Shown: positions 17,878 through 33,176 of the stretch, one piece after another
Position numbering within the stretch: the first letter of the stretch is position 1
Layout: the number at the start of each line of letters is the position of its first letter
From: Laetmonice hystrix
Taxonomy: Eukaryota
Length of the DNA: 64,000 bases
Direction of reading: 5' to 3'
Assembly: GCA_965235115.1 (NCBI GenBank)
Contig: OZ249436.1
Span: 30,070,001 to 30,134,000 of the forward strand
Notes under the pieces: model-generated
Told to the model about the DNA's origin: nothing
What the model saw: only the letters and a program-made list of their open reading frames with translations
Database searches by the model: none
Program-made: the position numbers and the translations under genes

Positions 17878-18053
17878 NNNNNNNNNNNNNNNNNNNNNNN
17901 NNNNNNNNNNNNNNNNNNNNNNNNNNNNNNNNNNNNNNNNNNNNNNNNNNNNNNNNNNNNNNNNNNNNNNNNNNNNNNNNNNNNNNNNNNNNNNNNNNNN
18001 NNNNNNNNNNNNNNNNNNNNNNNNNNNNNNNNNNNNNNNNNNNNNNNNNNNNN
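17878..18053. other. Assembly gap (176 N)
   Basis: run of N. Confidence 1.
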
Positions 18054-21637: not shown

Positions 21638-24600
21638 ATGACATCTAAGATGGTAAGCAGCGGCAACGTTTAGGCCTAATTGGATAATTACCTCCAAAAC
21701 TTTCTACTTTCTACCCGCAGGTGGGCGATAATGAAGTTCACATTATATCCGGACTGGTCGATTCTAATCTAGAAGTGTAAGGATTACACATTTTAAAAAC
21801 GTATTGAACATTATAGAGCCAGACTAGACTAGAGAATTAAGTGGTGTAGACAAACATAGGACGCGATAGGTGACAGGAAATAATGCAAGCCCAAGCATTT
21901 ATAACAATATAAGTGCCTACCGAGGAAGAATCCCCCCCCCCCACCAAAAGAAAATAATTTTAAATTGTGTTAAAAGGTAAAAGAAGGCCTATCTCTTTGC
22001 TTATTTTGTATTGTATATTTCTATATTGTATGAGATCAAAATATGCCATATTGATCATCACAGGCTATGATAGAGTATTATTGATCAACACTGTTTTACA
22101 GTGCAGACTGTCACTGTGGAAAGACATCAAGATCAAAGATGTCAGTAATAAAGAAATTATTCTCCAAGATGCGGGCCAACAGTGGCCCAGAACTAGGCCT
22201 TCAGAATACAGTTGTCACCAAAGAAAAACGACCAACAGGAATATCAGTCACAATTGTCCGTGGATTCATTCAAAATGAACAGGTAAATTATTACATTGTT
22301 ACCTAACAAATAGAATGTTTTATTGCCATATTTAATTCATAATGATACCATAAAAAGGTAAGGGGTGGTTCAACATTTTCAACATCCTACAAAGAATACT
22401 CTTTTTGATGACCATCCCCCCAAAAGTGTACATAGAAGAAAATGTCTGGTTTTTTTTGCGTGGCTGACGAACTACAGATCAACATTTTTTCCCTTTTTTC
22501 AAAAAGCGTATCTTAGGTGTTAACCCCCTCCCCCTAGCGTACGGTTTGGGCATCTGTGAAAATGATAAAAATGTTGAACGACCCGTAAAAGAAGTTATTT
22601 ATAAAAAATAAAAGTTTTCTTGAGAAGCAGCATGGTATTTCAGTACGGTAGTGTACCATATTACATATGTATCATATCAGGAAAATGAAGTTTAAAGTGA
22701 TATATCAGTGATGGAACTTTGTTGTGAAAGCTAAAAATGATGCTTTCTGACAAGGGGCTACATTGAACTTTGTATATTATGTTAATCCATTGTATCCACA
22801 AAATTATAGTTTTTAAGAGGATCAAGTCACATGTTATGACATAAATATAGAACATGCATGTACCTACTGACTGGTATTTTGTTGCAGTCAAATGTCCTAG
22901 TGAATTCCATTTCGAAAAGTAAGGAATTGAACTATGGTGCCATCACCCGGGCACTCTTAAAGAAGGCAGGGCGGGAACTTCAGAAGGCAGTGGATGTTGT
23001 GCCTGGTATGCCACAATCTGGAGATGTATTGGCTACTGCTGCCTATGGCTTGGAGTCAAACAAAGTATTCCACGTTGTCCTTCCAGACTTCTACGTTGAA
23101 GATGCTGGTGATGTAGGTCATTTTTATCTAAATGCGAAACTACTCCATTCTTGCTTGTCTTTTGTCTTCTTAAAGGTAAAATTTGCTTGATGTTACGTAA
23201 TGACTTCATATCATAAAGGTAAAGAATCAAAGCTTGCTCCTTCTAAGGGTGTTCAGGGTAATAACTAGCATTGAGGAAGATGAGGCTTGGTTTGTTTGGT
23301 GTTTGTTGTTTGAAATGACGATTTTTACCCAAGTTAATCACTTCAGGTTCATACCCATTGTGTGCTTTTATATAGAGGTTCTGGGCCCCAACACCTAGCT
23401 AAAAAATGTGAGAAAACAATAAAAAAAATCTCAAAATATGTAATGGCATTATATATGACAACATACAAATTATAATCCAGAAATGAAAACTATCCGATCC
23501 ATCCTATATCATGATGAAGAATGCTAGCGTCTGCTTAGTACTCAGAAAATCCACTAGGTTGCAGGACCAATCCCTGGGCTGGTTTTCCAGGCAAAAAATT
23601 TCTGGGGGACCATGCCCCCAGACCCCCCTAGAAGAGTTATCTTCATCGCGTCACTTTTTAAGGTCTGGTACGTGACAGCCCTGGTTTTATACAAGCATGA
23701 GTTGCAGGCATGAAGCATAGGCATGTAGGCATAGTCTCACATCCATTCATGAAAGAAATCTTTCCTAATCAGTTTGTTTGTATGTCTTCAGATTTTGGAG
23801 AAAGCTGTACTGCAATGTCTTACCATGGCAAACAACGAGTCTTTTCGATCCATCTCCTTCCCAGCTCTTGGTACGGGGGGACACGTCTACCCAGCATTTG
23901 TCAGTGCCCACAGGATGATGGAAGCTGTTCGTCGTTTTGAAGCGGAGGTTCAAACTCACCATGTGTCAGACATTCGATTCATCTGCAGTGAAAGCCGTAA
24001 CGTCAATGTAGGACTAATAATTACTTCAATACATAATCAGTATTTTCATAATCAGTGTTATTTTATAGGACAGTCCGACAACCCTTTTTTCCTTTGTGTC
24101 CAGTCATGTATCTCATAATAGCATTTCTGAATGTTCTGATCCCCTCTGTAAAAAAAAGTGAATAGTAGGAAAAAATATCTGGATCACACTGTAAAATTTC
24201 ATTACCTGACAGTGTCGTAGAATACACCTTACTGTAGAGCAATCACATTTATTTGGACTCGGGGAGTATGTCTCATTTCAATGACTTCAAAATGCAGACA
24301 TGGGCTGTTAGGTTAGATAATGCAGTGGTGATGAAAAGTGCCGGACTGCCGGACATTGCCGGCAATTTTTACTGATGTCCGATGTGAGGCATAATAACAT
24401 CTGACAGATTGTCTGGTGTTATCAGATGGTCATGATGTTGGTAACCAGTACTCAAGGTCCATGAGAAAGGTGGCAGCCTCACAGTCGGTGGTCTGTCAGG
24501 CTGCCGCCTGGCCCTGGCCGGGTGTTATGTAAGGGTAGCTGATAAGGGCAGGTGGTGGTGACTTCCCCATTCCTCCCAGTGAGGGTTGGTTTGGAGGATT

Positions 24601-27600
24601 CTTGTGCTCAGAAGAGAGCTACTTGAACTAGCTGGGCCTTGTATAACTGTCTACTATATATTTTCTTGAATCTTCTATTGGAGGAGAGCGGAATAAAACA
24701 ATACTCTGATTATAGGTTGGCCAGCTGCCCTTGGTTTAGTGAGCCAGCAGGTTGGCGTGGATAGCATTAACACCCATTGGCATTGTCTTTGTATGACACT
24801 GGGATGGGAAGGAGCTGCTTGATGTACGTGTGTTGTTAAAATGCTAAGAAAGGGGAGTATTAATCCATGAGGAGTATCATAGTTTGCAATGACAAAGGGC
24901 AACTTACTGAATTCATAGTTTGATATATTCATTCTTGGTTGAAAAAGTCCAGAATTTGAAAATGTGCCCCACCTAACATTATGGGCTGGCTAAGGGCCCG
25001 TAACTCCCTCATCAAGCACAAACCCTAGGGCCTATAGGAATTATTTTCAAAGTTGAAAAATTGTGCAATAAATTGAAAAATAAATTAAGGGCCTGATCAA
25101 ACTTGTAAGGGCCTGCTAAAAGTGTCTAAGGGCCTGCTAAAACCTTTTTGACGCCTGTTCAGATTTTGGCTAACTTCGTGTCCTAAGGTTCCATGAATTG
25201 CAAATGTGTTCCAGAATATATTTCAATGTTTTTCCATCAATAAATCTGTCACTATTACTTTGATTATTTCCTACTTTCTACTTTCCTGAAGAAATATGGA
25301 TTGTATCAGAAAAATGTGACTGATTGATATATCGTAACGCGTAATTTGACTGATACCCAGGCCAACCGTCTGTAAACATGTCTGGTTCCTTTTTGTATTT
25401 TTAACTCCAGTACTTATAGTACGGATCTAAAATTGGATATCAAACGCAGAGAAAGAAGCACAAAAGAGGAACGTTTTAAAAATGAAAGTCTAATAAGGCT
25501 ATACTTGTATTACAAAACAACAATATATTAATTTTGTTTATTGTCTGCGAAATGGAAAAATGTCAGGTGTTAAAGCCATTTTACATCTGACAAAAATGTC
25601 TGATGTAAAACAAAAATGTCAGATGTAACGCTCTTTTATATCTGACACTTTGTCAGATGTAGAAAAAAACTTTTCATCCCCACTGTAATGACTTGGACTA
25701 CATTAATCTATAAATGTATATACCCATTGACATGAACAGCCAATGAAATTTCTCAGGCCATGAACCAGTGAACTTTATTTCCTTGAATATTAGTAGCTGA
25801 GCTTACACTGGATACAATGTACATACAATGTGGCAACTGGGCCACATTAGATACATTGTATCCAGTTTGTTAGTAAATTGTAATAGATTTTTACAAATGT
25901 ACAGTCTTGGGAAAATGTTCTTTATAAAAATTAAAAAAAACTTAGGGGTTGACCATTTGTGACTGTCACCATAAAAGTTTTCTGGGAGCATCCCCCAGAG
26001 CGCCCCCTAGAATTAGCACCTTGGAATTAGCACCTTGCCTTGTGCGTTGCTTTTACAGCCTGATATACAAATATGAAGCTGTGCAACAATAAAAAGGTTC
26101 TATGAGTGCAAATGGGGTTTCCTAGTATAATTTAATGTTTTCTTCAATGATTATTAATTTTTCACTACATTTGTATTTGTGAATTTTTTCAATGTGGCTA
26201 TTTTCTTGATAAGGTATTTTCATGATATATAATACAAAGCCATATATAATGCCATTACATAATAGTAAATTATGTTTGTTTAGCTATCCAGTCCTATATG
26301 TGATGTGTTCTTGTACTAGGCTTTCCGTACAGCGATACATGAAATGCCATCAGCTTACCAACGTCCTCTAGTGCAGAAAATGAAAGACCTGCAGAAAACA
26401 TCCACTAAAAAAGGAGGAAAGACCATGTTCCGTCCATCGTCCATTCTAAGGGACAAGAAACATACACCTTCTCCTCTTACAAAGGAGTCCAGGTCATCTA
26501 CTGGAAAAACTCACCTGTTCAAGATTGGTAAAGGTTTGTGCCCTTTCAAATGCTCTATATTTCTCTGTATCCAAATAGTTTCTTATTTTGTTTTCTACAA
26601 TCAATTGTTTTCATTTTTTTTGTTAAGATATGTAATTTAGTTAAAAGATAATGTGCCCTGGGCTAAAGGATTATACATGTAATTTATTTTATATGCTTTC
26701 TTTCTTAGCATAATCTTGACTATAAATGTATGTTTGATAAAGTTCAGCTTGGAGCTCACATTGGTATTCTATGAAATGTTAGCAGTTGCTGAGGATTAGA
26801 TGGTTACAGTTGGTGAGGATTAGATGGTTACAGTTGCTGAGGATTAGATGGTTACAATTGCTGAGGATTAGATGATTACAGTTGAACTAGATAGAATTTT
26901 CTTCCCAAAGTCAGCTCCAAAAATTGTGGCATAGTCTGCGATAAATATATTGTGCTAATAACTGTCTGAGACCCCTCAGTCTTTTTCCATGACAGTGATA
27001 TATTAATCTACTGAGAACATTGCTTCCTTGCAGCCCTCGGGAAGAACAAAACTTACCGCGCTGAACAGTTGCTGACGAAGATTCGATCACATTATACATC
27101 GTCCAATGAATCATTGGTAACCACTTCATTCATTCCGTGGAGGTGGGTTCTTACACAAAGTCGATCTAGTACTTCAGGAAAAGATGTTTCCCTACTGTTG
27201 GATCAAATATTTTCTGACTCCCGACGAAGCCCAATCCTTATTCATGGCATAACTAGTGTTGGCAAATCAAGGCTTCTTCACTTGATCACTCGAAAGTGGG
27301 CAACGGGTGACTTGAAAAATGTCAGGCTCGTGGTTGTAGTGTCTTTTAGGTTACTACTTGAAATGGATGACACATCGCTTACACTGCAAAACTGTGTGCT
27401 CCACTCGCTTCAGACATTAGGAGTAGACCGTGACAGGGTCGATGAGTTGATGCATTATTGCAATGGAAAGATCCTGGTCTGCATCGACGATTTAGAAGCA
27501 TGGACCCAACGTTTTGCACAGGACCTTGTTCAGGATCATTTCTTTTCCCGCGCTCAAGTACTTGTAACAGCCCGCACGTCAAGCGCATGTTTCTCGGCCA

Positions 27601-30600
27601 AAAACTATAATCCAAAGGTAACAGTTGAACTAAAGGGTTTCACGGCAGAGCAGGTCCTCTCGTTTCTGAACGTTCACGAAGAGAATGGCAGTTTGAAACG
27701 GGCACAGCATTCCTTACCAGAAAGTGTCGTGAAGACATTAACCAAAGAATCATCATTGGCTGTGACACAAGCTCCAGGATGGTTAGAACTCATACAACAC
27801 TATGCCTTGAAAACCTCCAAGGACATAGAAAAAGAAATGGAGAGGCTGACAAAGTTTTACCCCTTGCTTAATCTCTCAGTGACCAGTCTATTTGTCTCAG
27901 ATGAGTGGAATTTCCTTGAATTTGCCATAAAAATGGGTGAAGAGTTTTTACTCCTTCACCTTCAACAGAGAAGCAAGGTGTCAACAGACTGGAAATCGCT
28001 TCTCGGTGTAATACAGGACCATCCCATGACGTGCAGGTCCATGGTGGATTACTGCATGGGGGTGTATATGGCCTCACGGGTGAGCTATGGAGAGGGTGTG
28101 CCTGAAATCACGTCAATGGAGACATTGTACCTTCTCCAAATGTCACTGACCATAGCTTGCGGACGTTCTGCAGCCACAGCTGAGTACATCCAACTTCTCA
28201 CAGATCGACTAGCACTTGATGACCCTGATGTCCGATGGGCCAGGGAGCATGCACTGGACACAGATTCGCACAGTGCGCGAGTGTTGAAACGTCTCCATGA
28301 CCTCCAGGTGGCGTGTCTCCGGGAGAGCGGCGCCTTACCAACAGGAGGACCAGGTGGGTCCATGCCTCGAGACAACCAAAAGTTTACCTTTTTCTAAAAA
28401 TTCTTGAGAAACCTTATATCAGTTTGGCTTTGCTTCTGCCTTATAGACATATAATATTTTTCAGCTGTTGTGTTTACCATTGTTAATTCCATTTTGGACA
28501 TGTCTATTTTGCAAATCCAGACGTACCTGCTGAACTGGAGTACCTTGGTGCAGAGTATGCCCGAGTGTACCGACGAGCTTGTGAGGAAGGCACTCAGACT
28601 GTCCACCGGACCCGTGTCATGCTGGTGGGTCACTTTGGGGCAGGCAAAACGAGCTTGAAACGGCGTCTCGTGAATGAGGAGTTTGACCCTGATTATCATA
28701 TCACCAATGGTATAGAAGCCGATCCGTCGGCCTGTACCATTCATGTAGATCACACCCACAACTGGAGCCTCATAAAGAAAGGTAAACTTTCTGTGCAGGG
28801 TAGTGTTAGGGATGACGTAATTTGTAATTATGTTAGCTGAAGGTGATCCAGTCCAAGGGATAGGAGAAATCTTTTTAGAGGAGCTCATATTTACCCCGGT
28901 AATAGATGGTACTTTTGTAGATTAAATGAAGACTTCCAAAGCTATAATAATAACAGTATTCTTTTTAGATTCCAGATACGTCTTTGAGTTTCCACATATA
29001 ATTTATAGGAAGAGGTCAAATCGTGAACGTGAACCTATTCCTCTGTATTTGTGGATCGCTTGTATACTTTTTTATCCTCAATGTGAACGTAAATACCGCT
29101 TAAAACTTCAGCACTGAGAGATGTAACCACGGATGAGCACAGTAGCGAAGTGGCAAAAGTCTTGTTTAGGTATTTACAAAAACTGAGTTCATCCCAGCTG
29201 CCAATCAGTGATGTCTATGATGAAACAAATACCACGGACACAGAAGAGGACGCTTCTGTATCGTCAGATGTTGCATCAGACAGCGGTACTGAAGGGCAGG
29301 GCACTCCGGAACCAGTGCTGGACACCATAGGTAATTGTGAAGTTTCTTCCTTTTGAAGAATTGATTTCTGTGTTTTTAGACCATTACCTAATTGTACACC
29401 TCAGTCGAGATAAACTTGTCGTGAATACTTCTGTGACCTTTGATTCATCTGAAATAAGGAGACCATGTCCCCTGGTGACCTGATGCTGGTATCATCAAAC
29501 GTGCCTTTTCAGTTAACTATTTAGATATTTTGCATAAATTAATATGTCTCTTACAGTGAATTATTGATATCTGAAACAAACGTTTCTTTCAGATGGTAAA
29601 AATAGTGATGCTGAAAGTGGTTCTACTGGATTCCTTGACATTTCTGGTAGCCATAACAACAGTTTTACCTCCAGTAATGGTAAGGAAGTTTTACTCATTT
29701 AAAGTGAATTTTTATAAGACCTCCTAAGACTTTTAATGTTTTTATTTTTTTCATTTTTATTGCCGTACATGTTTAGTTAGAAGTGCAAAGTTCTTGTATT
29801 TCACATGTTACGTTCCCGCTATATTTCACTCCTTTTATTTTTCCATCCTACCAATAGGCAGCCTTGCTCAGCGGTCAACATCTATGAATCTATTGGTACA
29901 AGCCATGGGAGAAGCTGGCTTACAAGATGCGGAAGAGATTGTTCAGTCTCTCCCGTTGAAAGTCATCGAAGAGTTTAAGAAACTGGTGTTGAACAAAGAC
30001 TGTCCACCTGAGTCTACGGGTGATGGCAGCGAGGTGAAGCTCTCATTCTGGGACTTTGCCGGTCAGCAGGTGTTTTACACAACCCACCAGACTTTCCTGT
30101 CCCACCGAGCCATATACCTGCTTGTACTTGACATCACAAAGGATCTCAAACATCCAATCAAAACTCTGCGCCAGGGGCGCCATGGCAAGAGAGTGGATAA
30201 GGCATGCCCTCAGGATGTAGGCCGTAAGTGGATTAACTTGTTGATAGCTACGGAATTTATGTTTTATCATGCATGTGGGATTCAGTTATTATGATGTTTG
30301 AAGGATTTGTGGCCTTTCATAAAAAGATGTTCACCGTGTCACGAGCTGGACCTGGTGTGTGTATAATTGTCCAAGGTGTTACCCCGAGTCTTGGCAAATG
30401 CTGTTGGTCACCCATGGCTGATGATATATGGTACTTTTTACAGTTCTTAAGGAGTATCTCTGCGAATTGTTGCAGATACTTTGTGATGAAATATGTTTAA
30501 CTTTCCAGAGTACCTCGATTACTGGTTAAACTGCATACACACCCATGCTGTCAAGTCTGATCAGGGTTGTCCACCGGTCCACCCAGTCCAGCCACCGGTG

Positions 30601-33176
30601 ATCATAGTCTGTACTCACAAAGATGCCCTTGAAAAGGTATTTCTCCAAGACATTTTAAGTGCAATATCAGACAATAGTAACTATATTATGCTACGTTATA
30701 TATTATATTATAAAACTACAGTTTCTTGATGGAAACAATCACTAGGGTCAAGGGCATTTTCTGTACGGTAAAGAATTGGTTATGATTTATGTTTGAAATC
30801 CTTTACTGTTGTGTCACAATTAGATCTGTTTTGGAGGATCTCCTAGCCATTATGTCAGGTAATAATTTCAACTTAAGTAAGGCAGGGTTTGTAGCAACCA
30901 CGTCCAATATCAAGAGATATTTTCTTGAATGCTCTTTAAAAATTCTGATGTGCTGAGACCTAATCTTATCAAATTTTTTACTTCAATTTGGGGAAAAGGA
31001 TTGCCAAAAGAACCAAGCATGCAAGGAGTATTTCCATGACGTTTATAGACATATCGAGGGAAAGGCCTACGCTGACCATGTCTACCAAAAGTTTTTTGCC
31101 GTATCAAATGCAGAGGAAAATGACAAAGAAATAAACCGACTGCAACAGGCCATTGTTCAGCTCGCTCAGAAACAACACTACTGGGGTGAAAGCATTCCTT
31201 TGAAATGGTTGGCACTTCGAACCAAACTTCGTGAGGTGCATGCATGTGAGGGTAGCGTGATGTCGGTCGTAGCAATCAGCGAGCTGGCCAATGAAGTAGG
31301 AATTACTAAGGAGGACGAGGTTAAGACATTCCTTCTCTTCTACCATGCACTGGGAGAGATCATTTTCTTTGACGACGTCGCTCTCAAAGAGTTTGTGATA
31401 CTTGATCCCCAGTGGCTCATGGATAACTTCCGTAAAGTGATAACAATCAGTGAATTCCACAAGCAAGAACAGTTTGAAAATAGTCGTATTCATTGGGCAA
31501 ACCTGGACGACTATGGAATCCTGCATGACGTTATTCTTGACAACGTCTGGGAGCCGAGTTTGAAACACCAGTTGGTGTGTATCATGCAGAAGTTCGATCT
31601 CCTTCTTCCAGTACCTGAGAATTACGACTTTGGAGATGATATACAGATACCTGGATACAAAAAGGGTGGGGTCAAAAGGCCGTTGTACTTTGTGCCTTGT
31701 CTCCTGCCTCAAGCCAGTGAGGAAGATATTCCACCAGTTGGACCAGCAGACCCTGGTCCCTTACAGATCGTCTTTAAGGATGGATTCGTATCAGTGGGCG
31801 TTTTTCATAGAGTTCTGGCTAGCTGCATCAATGACCTCAAGTGGTTGTGCTTTAGCAACATCTGCCATGACTTTGCAACATTTCTCCCTGATGAAGAATC
31901 GCCAGTGAGTATCAGTTTGCGATGCTTAGCTGACAGCATTGAGATAGCCGCACGAGTTCTCGAAGAGGAAGTTCAAGGCGAAAGCTCAGCAAACCCGGAA
32001 ACAACATGGCAGGAGGGCACTAGCATTCTGCCGCAGGTTCTACAGGGCCTGCTTGGTCGAGTCACTGTGATTACCCAGTCCGTGAGTCCATCTAATGAGT
32101 TTGACATTGCCGTCCGATGCCGATGCCGTGGAACGCAACAAAAAGGGGCTGTCATCAAAGTAGGGTGCAATGGTGAAAGGATTGTTGGCAAGAAACTTAT
32201 CAAATGTGCAAGACATTATTCCGCCTTTAATGCCAAGCAGTTCCATCCCTGGTTCACGGAGCCACAAACCAGAAGCGTATGTATTTTTATGACTCAGACT
32301 CAGGAAAAAACTTATCATCTTAGGTTAAACATAACTTTGGTCTTACCCTCGTAAGCATCGTTTTTTCCCCTGTACTTGTTTGTGGTAGTAAAGGACCATA
32401 TTTTTCTAGCAGGAGATTTTTTAACATTATTAACTCTTGGTGGAGGTATTGTTTTGATTTAGTGTTGAGTGATATAAATTGGAACTACCCCCAGTACTTC
32501 TCATTTATTCAGGCACAAAATAGACCAACACCAACAAACCCAACACCACCTAAAGGTAATCACTTCAAAAGATACTGGAAAAATATCTGAGAGGAAACAA
32601 ACTCTTACTCTTGGTAACATGAAGTGAAAAAAGTCACAGAGGATCTTAAAGTAATAATTACTGTATTAAATATATATCGAGAATCTTAGAGTAATAATTA
32701 CTGTATTAATTATATCGATAGGAAATTTACGTGTCATTTAACATGTGACCTCGAGTTATGTTCAAGCTTTTTACACTTCGTTGACTATGCAATTAAATCC
32801 AGTACATAACTGGAAAGATGAGTGCTACAATGACTGCAGAAGAATCAAAAGAGTGTTTTTGGTGTTTGCAGAGGTGCCTACAGAAGACCAGTTGAGCGAC
32901 CTTGCCAGCGAGTTGGGCTTTGAATGGGAACTGCTCGCAATCAAACTTGGGCAAACCTACTCGCAGATCCAGCAGTGTAAAATGGAGAACCAGTACAGTG
33001 CACACGGGTGTATATTTTCAATGTTGTGTCGATGGAGAATGCGGGCTAAGCCGGGCCATGTACTAGACATACTCACCGGGGCGCTTATTCAGTCGGCGAG
33101 AGTCGACCTGGCTGAGAAGGTCGCTCGATGGAGGTTTGCAGGCAAGGACCCATCAGTGGACCAGTCAGGCCGATGA
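21638..33176 (+). CDS. Macro - NACHT-like NTPase - Roc - COR - Death domain protein (Roco family fusion), 15 coding exons, ~1635 aa
   Basis: Exons 21638-21652, 21721-21776, 22102-22282, 22888-23112, 23792-24007, 26320-26527, 27034-28353, 28521-28781, 29112-29330, 29593-29679, 29858-30223, 30509-30636, 30999-32276, 32513-32555, 32872-33176 join in phase to 4908 nt. The first two exons and the 30999 acceptor are least certain. Confidence 0.85.
22102..22282 (+). CDS. Roco fusion exon 3 (start of macro domain: GISVTIVRGFIQNEQ)
   Basis: ttttacag acceptor, CAG|gtaaat donor, phase 2-0. Confidence 0.75.
22360..22586. mobile_element. MITE (~227 bp)
   Basis: TIRs AGGGGTGGTTCAACATTT / AAATGTTGAACGACCCGT. 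Confidence 0.55.
22888..23112 (+). CDS. Macro domain exon (PARP9/14/15 macro-2/3-like)
   Basis: NVLVNS...GAITRALLKKAG...GLESNKVFHVVLP. Confidence 0.88.
23792..24007 (+). CDS. Macro domain C-terminal exon
   Basis: LQCL...RSISFPALGTG..YP....A..MMEAV..F, IRFI. Confidence 0.9.
24323..25685. mobile_element. 1.36-kb non-autonomous TIR element with 5-bp TSD TAATG
   Basis: TIRs CAGTGGTGATGAAAAGT / ACTTTTCATCCCCACTG; subterminal (A)TGTCAGA/TCTGACA repeats. Confidence 0.75.
26320..26527 (+). CDS. Basic linker exon
   Basis: tactag|GCT, G|gtaaag; phase 0-1; AFRTAIHEM ends the macro helix. Confidence 0.75.
26785..26884. repeat. 24-bp tandem repeat (GTTGCTGAGGATTAGATGGTTACA x~4)
   Basis: direct reading, intronic. 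Confidence 0.9.
27034..28353 (+). CDS. NACHT-like STAND NTPase exon
   Basis: Walker A ILIHGITSVGKS, W-x-x-G and VVVVSFR, Walker B ILVCIDDLE, sensor-1 VLVTAR, VELKGFT; single 1320-nt phase 1-1 exon. Confidence 0.85.
28521..28781 (+). CDS. Roc GTPase exon (G1, G2)
   Basis: VPAELEYLG..YRRACEEG pre-Roc helix; RVMLVGHFGAGKTSL; ITNGI. Confidence 0.92.
29112..29330 (+). CDS. Acidic/Ser-rich insertion exon within Roc
   Basis: cttcag acceptor, G|gtaatt donor; phase 1-1. Confidence 0.75.
29593..29679 (+). CDS. Second Ser/Gly-rich insertion exon within Roc
   Basis: tttctttcag|AT ... G|gtaagg; open, phase 1-1. Confidence 0.7.
29858..30223 (+). CDS. Roc GTPase exon (G3)
   Basis: KLSFWDFAGQQVFYTTHQTFLSHRAIYLLVLDIT. 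Confidence 0.92.
30509..30636 (+). CDS. Roc GTPase exon (G4)
   Basis: YLDYWLNCIH...PPVIIVCTHKD. Confidence 0.9.
30999..32276 (+). CDS. Roc G5 + COR domain exon
   Basis: FFAVSN, WGESIPLKWLAL, FLLFYHALGEIIFF, VILDPQWL, MQKFDLL, YFVPCLL, GVFHRVLA. Confidence 0.92.
32513..32555 (+). CDS. Pro/Thr-rich micro-linker exon
   Basis: tattcag|GCA...AAAG|gtaatc; supplies the phase 0->1 change needed for the death-domain exon. Confidence 0.7.
32872..33176 (+). CDS. C-terminal Death domain exon
   Basis: LSDLASELGFEWELLAIKLG...IQQCK.EN....IFSMLCRW....L..ALIQSARVDLAE; TGA stop. Confidence 0.9.

Follow-up and report, generated by a model that had tools for sequence, protein, structure and literature searches.

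Can a NACHT-type ATPase and a Roc-COR GTPase be parts of one polypeptide chain and, if so, what might such a protein do? The question is raised by a locus of Laetmonice hystrix lying within a stretch of 64,000 nucleotides, referred to here as the window (positions 30,070,001 to 30,134,000 of the forward strand of contig OZ249436.1, assembly GCA_965235115.1). The window is AT-rich eukaryotic DNA from an assembly of 627 Mb in 35 contigs, and six-frame inspection reveals open segments following one another on the + strand across 21–34 kb. A sequence-only reading had joined these segments into a gene of 15 exons and ~1635 residues beginning at 21638, and had suggested that its product is an undescribed immune or cell-death receptor. 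We find one + strand gene at 22139–33176, composed of 12 GT-AG exons with an uninterrupted coding sequence of 4713 nt that specifies 1570 residues. There is strong support for the encoded product being a cytosolic protein with, in order, a macro domain, a basic linker, a complete NOD module, a Roc domain with a large insert, COR-A and COR-B, a Pro/Thr linker and a death domain. On sequence grounds, we consider it very probable that this is a single gene giving a single polypeptide.

All five modules score in Pfam, in searches made exon by exon rather than with the whole spliced protein. The matches run Macro, NACHT, Roc, COR and Death along the + strand and searches of the PDB agree with them. 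The two macro pieces (E 4.2e-5 and 5.9e-5) both lie just above the Pfam gathering score, the NACHT match reaches 42.5 bits against a cut-off of 26.7, and the Death match covers 84 of the 86 profile positions. Pfam gave no leucine-rich repeat (LRR), kinase or ankyrin match in any exon. Since the five modules and two short linkers account for all 1570 residues, the protein has no LRR, WD40, TPR or ankyrin repeats. The LRR-less domain order proposed from the letters is thereby borne out, and every motif quoted for it (GITSVGKS, ILVCIDDLE, VLVTAR, GHFGAGKTS, ITNG, DFAGQ, THKD and the VSN of FAVSN) is present in the expected position. One phase-consistent gene does indeed combine two P-loop switches of different kinds, a STAND NACHT ATPase followed by a Roc-COR GTPase, flanked by macro on the N-terminal side and by Death on the C-terminal side.

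The gene model was built from open frames, the phases of the splice sites and an alignment to L002, the orthologous locus of another organism. A HMMER search of the NACHT exon against 1.84 billion cluster representatives returned 23 matches, the 7 close ones being short single-exon open reading frame (ORF) calls whose contigs were then inspected. At L002 all modules are found in the same order and on the same strand. The independently built L002 model has 12 exons, all 11 intron phases identical to those of the window gene, several equal exon lengths (225 and 261 nt) and 1586 residues; the two proteins align end to end with 46.7% identity over 1536 aligned residues. Conservation is uneven, from 70–77% in the exon carrying Roc G1 (exon 6), through 61% for G3–G5, 50% for COR, 47% for Death and 46% for macro, to 34–35% for the NACHT exon, which makes the NOD the least conserved module. 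A second species with the same 12 exons and the same phases puts the architecture far beyond chance.

This comparison also fixes the 5′ end of the gene. We set the start at the ATG at 22139 because the L002 ATG aligned with it has an in-frame TGA three codons upstream. The exons earlier proposed from 21638 onwards are unsupported, the L002 stop lying in frame just 5′ of the aligned ATG, and the estimate of 15 exons and ~1635 residues gives way to one of 12 exons and 1570 residues. The borders at 22888, 27034–28353 and 28781, and the end of the stop codon (33174–33176), are identical in both models.

The macro domain (amino acids ~30–195) is assembled from three exons. Exon 1 (22139–22282, + strand; residues 1–48) supplies the start codon and the first macro strand (ISVTIVRGFIQNEQ) and ends at the donor CAG/gtaaat. 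Exon 2 (22888–23112; residues 49–123) encodes the domain's N-terminal half in 225 nt, the same length as in L002, and exon 3 (23792–24007; residues 124–195) the C-terminal half, including the PALGTGG loop at 23861–23881. The nearest solved structures to exon 2 are those of PARP14 macro2 (3vfq, 3q71 and 5o2d; E 9e-11), and those to exon 3 are PARP14 macro2 (E 1.7e-9) followed by macroH2A1.1 (E 3e-7). Both of these are ADP-ribose-binding 'reader' macro domains, binders rather than enzymes. The window protein has in common with them the (D/N)VxVNS strand, present as NVLVNS at 22891–22908, and the FPA(I/L)GTG loop; four family members show no variation in the P-x-LGTG core of the latter. It differs from PARP14 and macroH2A1.1 in having a single macro domain, no PARP catalytic or histone part, and one substitution in the strand that is considered below. 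Reading of ADP-ribose by this domain is plausible from its sequence. It is followed by exon 4 (26320–26527; residues 196–265), which runs from phase 0 to phase 1 and encodes a basic Lys/Ser/Thr-rich linker between macro and NACHT. The first 22 residues of the linker are conserved with L002 (AFRTAIHEMP in the window, AFQTTMNEIP in L002).

Exon 5 (27034–28353; residues 265–705; Pfam NACHT E 7.9e-11) encodes the complete NOD module, NBD-HD1-WHD-HD2. Its Walker A motif, GITSVGKS, lies at 27246–27269, Walker B, ILVCIDDLE, at 27471–27497 and sensor 1, VLVTAR, at 27558–27575. Walker A, Walker B with the acidic residues that follow it, and the sensor-1 Arg are intact both here and in L002. An AlphaFold2 model of the exon, built from eight family sequences, has a pLDDT of 78 and a pTM of 0.80. 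The best Foldseek match of this model is NLRC4 (4kxf; E 1.6e-11, TMq 0.63), followed by NOD2, NAIP5 and NLRP3, and because the alignment with these proteins extends over ~500 columns, NBD, HD1, WHD and HD2 are all taken to be present. The Atlas look-alikes of the exon are animal NACHT clusters, and the next tier of its sequence relatives consists of ordinary NACHT-LRR proteins from animals, several of which have an Ig or Death N terminus. By sequence and modelled fold, then, exon 5 has the features of a NACHT-clade STAND NTPase, as had been proposed for 27034–28353.

The Roc domain (residues ~705–1080) follows directly and is spread over several exons. Exon 6 (28521–28781; residues 705–792; Pfam Roc E 3.4e-7) starts in phase 1, has the same length as in L002 (261 nt) and carries G1, GHFGAGKTS (28628–28654), and G2, ITNG (28700–28711). 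Exon 7 (29112–29330; residues 792–865) has phase-1 borders on both sides, as it does in L002, and encodes the conserved start of the Roc insert and then acidic, Ser/Thr-rich low-complexity sequence. The remainder of the insert, strand 3 and G3, DFAGQ (30052–30066), are encoded by exon 8 (29858–30223; residues 865–987; Pfam Roc E 1.2e-9), which is 62% identical to its L002 counterpart. Exon 9 (30509–30636; residues 987–1029) carries G4, THKD (30613–30624), within the conserved stretch YLDYWLN...VIIVCTHKD(A/T)LEK, and uses the same donor in both species. G5, FAVSN (31095–31109), is reached in exon 10. G1 to G4 are identical in L002, and its G5 reads FAVSNS. The insert itself comprises ~130 residues (exons 7–8, residues ~793–922, window positions 28782–30030) and separates the strand that follows switch I from the one with DFAGQ. 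Conservation with L002 is seen at both ends (68% over ALRDV...LPISD, and 62%), and the middle of the insert is of low complexity, acidic and rich in Ser and Thr. We know of no comparable insert in LRRK2 or DAPK1.

Exon 10 (30999–32276; residues 1030–1455; Pfam COR-A E 1.5e-16) encodes, after G5, the COR region (residues ~1081–1455). An AlphaFold2 model of this exon (pLDDT 69) has as its top Foldseek matches the COR of C. tepidum Roco (3dpt and 3dpu; E 3e-12 to 4e-12, 353 aligned columns), and then LRRK1 and LRRK2. Although Pfam scored COR-A alone, the model matches the whole C. tepidum Roco COR, so that both COR-A and COR-B are present. The best matches of the region at the level of sequence are prokaryotic Roco chains. 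A Roc domain with G1 to G5 directly before COR places the protein in the ROCO family by sequence and fold, and GTP binding is predicted. At the Roc–COR junction a direct phase-0 join of 30636 to 30999 is the simplest option; in L002 the COR exon follows LEK with nothing in between, and 30999 was taken as the acceptor on that ground. A 22-nt mini-exon at 30837–30858, used with an acceptor at 30958, is also phase-consistent, and was set aside since L002 makes the direct join.

The C terminus is a death domain (residues 1471–1570) encoded by exon 12 (32872–33176; residues 1470–1570 and the stop codon; Pfam Death E 3.9e-11), and the nearest solved chains are the death domain of PIDD (E 1.3e-7), CRADD and RIPK1. 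Phase 0 must be bridged to phase 1 between COR and Death, which requires exon 11 (32513–32555; residues 1456–1470), a Pro/Thr-rich mini-exon of 43 nt. It was the sole candidate to pass the phase and splice-site filters, and its counterpart in L002 is a 49-nt Pro/Thr mini-exon with excellent splice sites.

The architecture is found in further loci. The closest relative is P0001 (61% identity), in which NACHT, Roc and COR-A ORFs occur in series. A second, more diverged paralogue lineage, represented by L006, by P0004 in a third assembly and by L007 from a fourth source, keeps the order Macro, NACHT, Roc, COR, Death wherever contigs are long enough; altogether, module order is retained at the L006, P0001, P0004, L003 and L007 loci. 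L006 lies ~11 kb from the L002 stretch, on the same contig and the opposite strand. At L006 10001–11245 (protein P0005) the Walker A Lys is replaced by Arg (GAPAIGRS), a substitution that hints at a degenerate or regulatory ATPase copy.

Polymorphism supports the reading frame across the gene. Comparison of the assembly with three DNA sequencing runs listed 12 exonic polymorphisms, 11 of them synonymous and the other Arg to Lys; the list holds the best-supported differences and 41 more lie outside it. The synonymous share is far above the roughly one-quarter expected by chance, which argues for purifying selection on this frame. A 3-bp in-frame indel polymorphism is found at 26412 in exon 4. 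The window gene has no second copy: queries with its NACHT exon and with a NACHT of the second paralogue lineage matched nothing else in the genome. A single copy with almost exclusively synonymous polymorphism points to a conserved hub for stress or danger signals, comparable to PIDD1 or DAPK1, more than to a receptor that diversifies against pathogens. The earlier suggestion of an undescribed immune or cell-death receptor is hence upheld in part. The architecture and its apparent novelty speak for it, whereas copy number and polymorphism fit a conserved hub better than a fast-evolving receptor of pathogens.

How does this protein compare with known systems? NLRs (NLRC4, NOD2 and NAIP, and invertebrate Death-NACHT-LRR and Ig-NACHT-LRR proteins) resemble it in combining a complete NOD with a death-fold domain in one chain. 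They differ in having LRRs C-terminal to the NOD, where the window protein has Roc-COR; its death domain is far C-terminal instead of N-terminal, and the macro domain is at its N terminus. Lacking LRRs, it is not a bona fide NLR. DAPK1 likewise runs from Roc through COR to a death domain at the C terminus and has no LRRs (PMC6337361), but contains a kinase, a calmodulin-binding segment and ankyrin repeats in place of Macro and NACHT. Having neither kinase nor ankyrin repeats, the window protein is not a DAPK1 orthologue. Lophotrochozoan proteins such as the ROCO-MyD88-like and ROCO-TLR-like proteins of Aplysia also join Roc-COR to a death-fold signalling domain (Death, CARD or TIR; PMC9334734), and the Atlas clusters nearest to the COR exon are mostly molluscan, with COR-A accompanied by Death or CARD. 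These reported proteins and clusters are uncharacterized, and none has NACHT or Macro. The likeness to two bacterial systems is one of principle. In the Runella gasdermin system, Roc-COR is fused to a cell-death executor, the CHAT protease, and in the macro-domain ThsA of Thoeris, macro is the receptor of an NAD-derived immune signal. Both are prokaryotic, use protease, membrane or NADase effectors rather than a death domain, and are likened to the window protein by shared domains only.

The Roc-COR-Death half is therefore not new as a theme, being found in DAPK1 and in Atlas clusters that pair COR-A with Death or CARD. The fusion is built from known kinds, an NLR-like STAND protein and a ROCO protein, and is conserved in a narrow set of invertebrate genomes. 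For the combination itself, we found no description in the literature searched of NACHT together with Roc-COR in this arrangement, in line with the expectation that the module order is undescribed. NACHT is not mentioned in a review of ROCO proteins (PMC6337361), neither Roc nor macro comes up in a broad survey of NACHT repertoires across metazoans, and in a paper on sponge NLRs COR appears only as an abbreviation among the domains of an NLR architecture figure. No full-length protein with this NACHT was found among the 1.84 billion representatives, a library that may under-represent annotated eukaryotic proteomes, and InterPro architecture tables were outside the search. Ten more distant NACHT matches were looked up and none had a name or accession.

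What might the protein do? By analogy with its relatives, its probable role is to assemble a signalling complex in cell death or immunity. The account that we favour, with moderate confidence, is that of a nucleotide-gated signalling hub, in which an ADP-ribose-type input received through the macro domain would lead to NOD oligomerization, with Roc-COR as a checkpoint, and on to assembly of death domains. At rest, the NOD would be ADP-bound and closed. Roc-COR, occupying the place of the LRRs of an NLR, would contribute autoinhibition or a second, GTP-dependent checkpoint through its GTP- or GDP-dependent dimer or monomer state. Input to the N-terminal macro domain, most likely an ADP-ribose-containing ligand such as a mono-ADP-ribosylated protein or an NAD-derived nucleotide, would open the NOD and permit ATP-dependent oligomerization. 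The C-terminal death domains would then be clustered into a helical seed of the PIDDosome or Myddosome kind, which would recruit death-domain adaptors and, through them, caspases or NF-κB-type signalling.

There are precedents for several of these steps. ROCO proteins cycle between monomer and dimer in a GTP-dependent manner through COR-B and Roc, the behaviour of G proteins activated by dimerization (GAD; PMC6337361). In bacteria, Roc-COR drives a caspase-like CHAT protease that activates gasdermin in cell death (bioRxiv 10.1101/2021.06.07.447441), and the macro domains of Thoeris are receptors of NAD-derived signals (PMC11204291; bioRxiv 10.1101/2024.01.03.573942). Brown algae have ROCO proteins as candidate immune receptors (PMC11378527), and in Aplysia ROCO is fused to TIR or Death, with molluscan MyD88-like adaptors reported to be fused to ROCO (PMC9334734).

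Some observations weigh against this account, or against the gene model beneath it. The Asp of the macro first strand contacts adenine. At the start of the (D/N)V(I/L)VNS strand, the window protein has Asn50 (codon 22891–22893) where PARP14 macro2, L002 and L006 have Asp, and because Asn replaces the adenine-contacting residue, ADP-ribose binding could be weakened; judged from sequence, the change may alter nucleotide recognition in this species. That signals enter through macro and leave through Death is an assumption drawn from NLRs. As an acceptor, 30999 is weak (caatttggggaaaag directly before the junction) and the 22-nt mini-exon offers an alternative to it. Finally, the three sequencing runs over the locus are DNA, with an even depth of ~45 across exons and introns, and the case for a single mRNA is therefore comparative and population-genetic. 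Among the sequencing runs searched for the locus, none is on record as RNA. A small run of the same sample, X4, whose contigs total 59 M letters, contains 25% of the words of the COR exon; its size would suit a transcriptome and it may be RNA.

A reversed signal direction is a serious rival, although we give it a clearly smaller chance than the hub. The death domain would then be the input, docked on an activated death-domain receptor or adaptor complex, NACHT and Roc-COR would act as timer or scaffold, and macro would serve as output or regulator, by bringing in or shielding ADP-ribosylated targets or through hydrolase activity. This reading sits poorly with the nearest macro relatives, PARP14 macro2 and macroH2A1.1, being binders and not enzymes, and oligomerization in known NACHT proteins clusters a death-fold domain as the output. 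Yet a single copy under strong purifying selection would suit an adaptor, DAPK1 likewise has Roc-COR and a death domain at its C terminus (PMC6337361), and the molluscan MyD88-like adaptors fused to ROCO (PMC9334734) provide a parallel.

Less probable still, and put forward tentatively, is that the protein is the animal equivalent of immune effectors gated by nucleotide signals, with a checkpoint that needs two keys, ATP and GTP. Macro would receive a signal derived from ADP-ribose (for example, a product of TIR or PARP activity or a protein carrying ADP-ribosylation), NACHT would then oligomerize only when Roc-COR is permissive, and a death-domain signalosome would be seeded as a result.

It is unlikely that the locus gives two or more transcripts or isoforms, for example Macro-NACHT with intron 5 retained and Roc-COR-Death started at an internal promoter, in which case the main product would be other than the four-module polypeptide. 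Translation past the exon 5 donor does meet a stop after 14 codons, which makes a Macro-NACHT-only isoform possible, exon 4 contains in-frame Met codons, and the DNA nature of the runs leaves room for this view. However, the conserved sequence of exon 6, 70–77% identical to L002, reaches back to its phase-1 acceptor with no in-frame ATG before it, so that a separate protein cannot begin there. Two species at 47% identity agree in the phases of all 11 introns, and the module order recurs in the paralogue lineage; with linkage and phases conserved in this way, independent genes are not expected.

We likewise see little likelihood in a non-immune housekeeping regulator without pathogen or danger sensing, acting like DAPK1, LRRK or PIDD1 in the cytoskeleton, autophagy or DNA-damage checkpoints, since its supports (a single-copy gene outside any tandem cluster and without a paralogue in the window, nearly all polymorphisms synonymous, and a highly conserved Roc core, 70–77% in the G1 exon) are met by NACHT, death and PARP14-type macro domains all being concentrated in immunity and cell-death pathways, by a sensor-like NOD that evolves fastest (34–35% identity) and by other species carrying two diverged paralogues.

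The surroundings of the gene hold no relative of it in the window, where the other large ORFs gave a Fasciclin match alone (3028–3411, − strand; E 8e-6), which probably belongs to an exon of some unrelated gene nearby. At 17878–18053, ~4 kb upstream of the gene, 176 consecutive N mark an assembly gap or masked stretch. In intron 3, a high-copy repeat at 24260–25860, outside the protein, has a contig depth of 1,000–35,000 compared with ~45 elsewhere and is probably a transposon. The insertion is polymorphic, since a second form, with 21 other letters in place of 24310–25727 (joint 24309 to 25728), is present in the three DNA runs as well. Intron 4 contains a 24-bp tandem repeat (26778–26884; 4.4 copies, 92% matching) and intron 11 a 40-bp repeat (32639–32715; 1.9 copies). 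Elsewhere in the genome there are at least three further Roc-COR loci; within ~10 kb of the other three, no macro, NACHT or Death similarity to this protein was found. Downstream of one Roc-COR locus, at L019 2927–5370 (G000 C19), lie reverse transcriptase and zf-RVT ORFs of a retroelement, and L019 also has a 685-residue ORF with TX13 repeats on the opposite strand.

STAND ATPases (NLRs and Apaf-1) and ROCO GTPases (LRRK2 and DAPK1) are two great families of multidomain switches, which span cell-death, immune and neurodegeneration biology and have been studied separately. Both switches in one chain provide a direct system in which to study how ATP-driven oligomerization is coupled to GTP-driven dimerization, and allow one to ask what stands in for the LRR sensor in an LRR-less NLR-like protein. 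The locus is also a caution for NLR surveys that filter on LRRs. Were the protein a conserved adaptor, it would still widen the known repertoire of ROCO and NACHT architectures. A two-key checkpoint, if true, would represent a receptor class not described in animals. If the macro domain is the sensor, then ADP-ribosylation or NAD-derived signalling would be linked to the assembly of death-fold signalosomes in animals.

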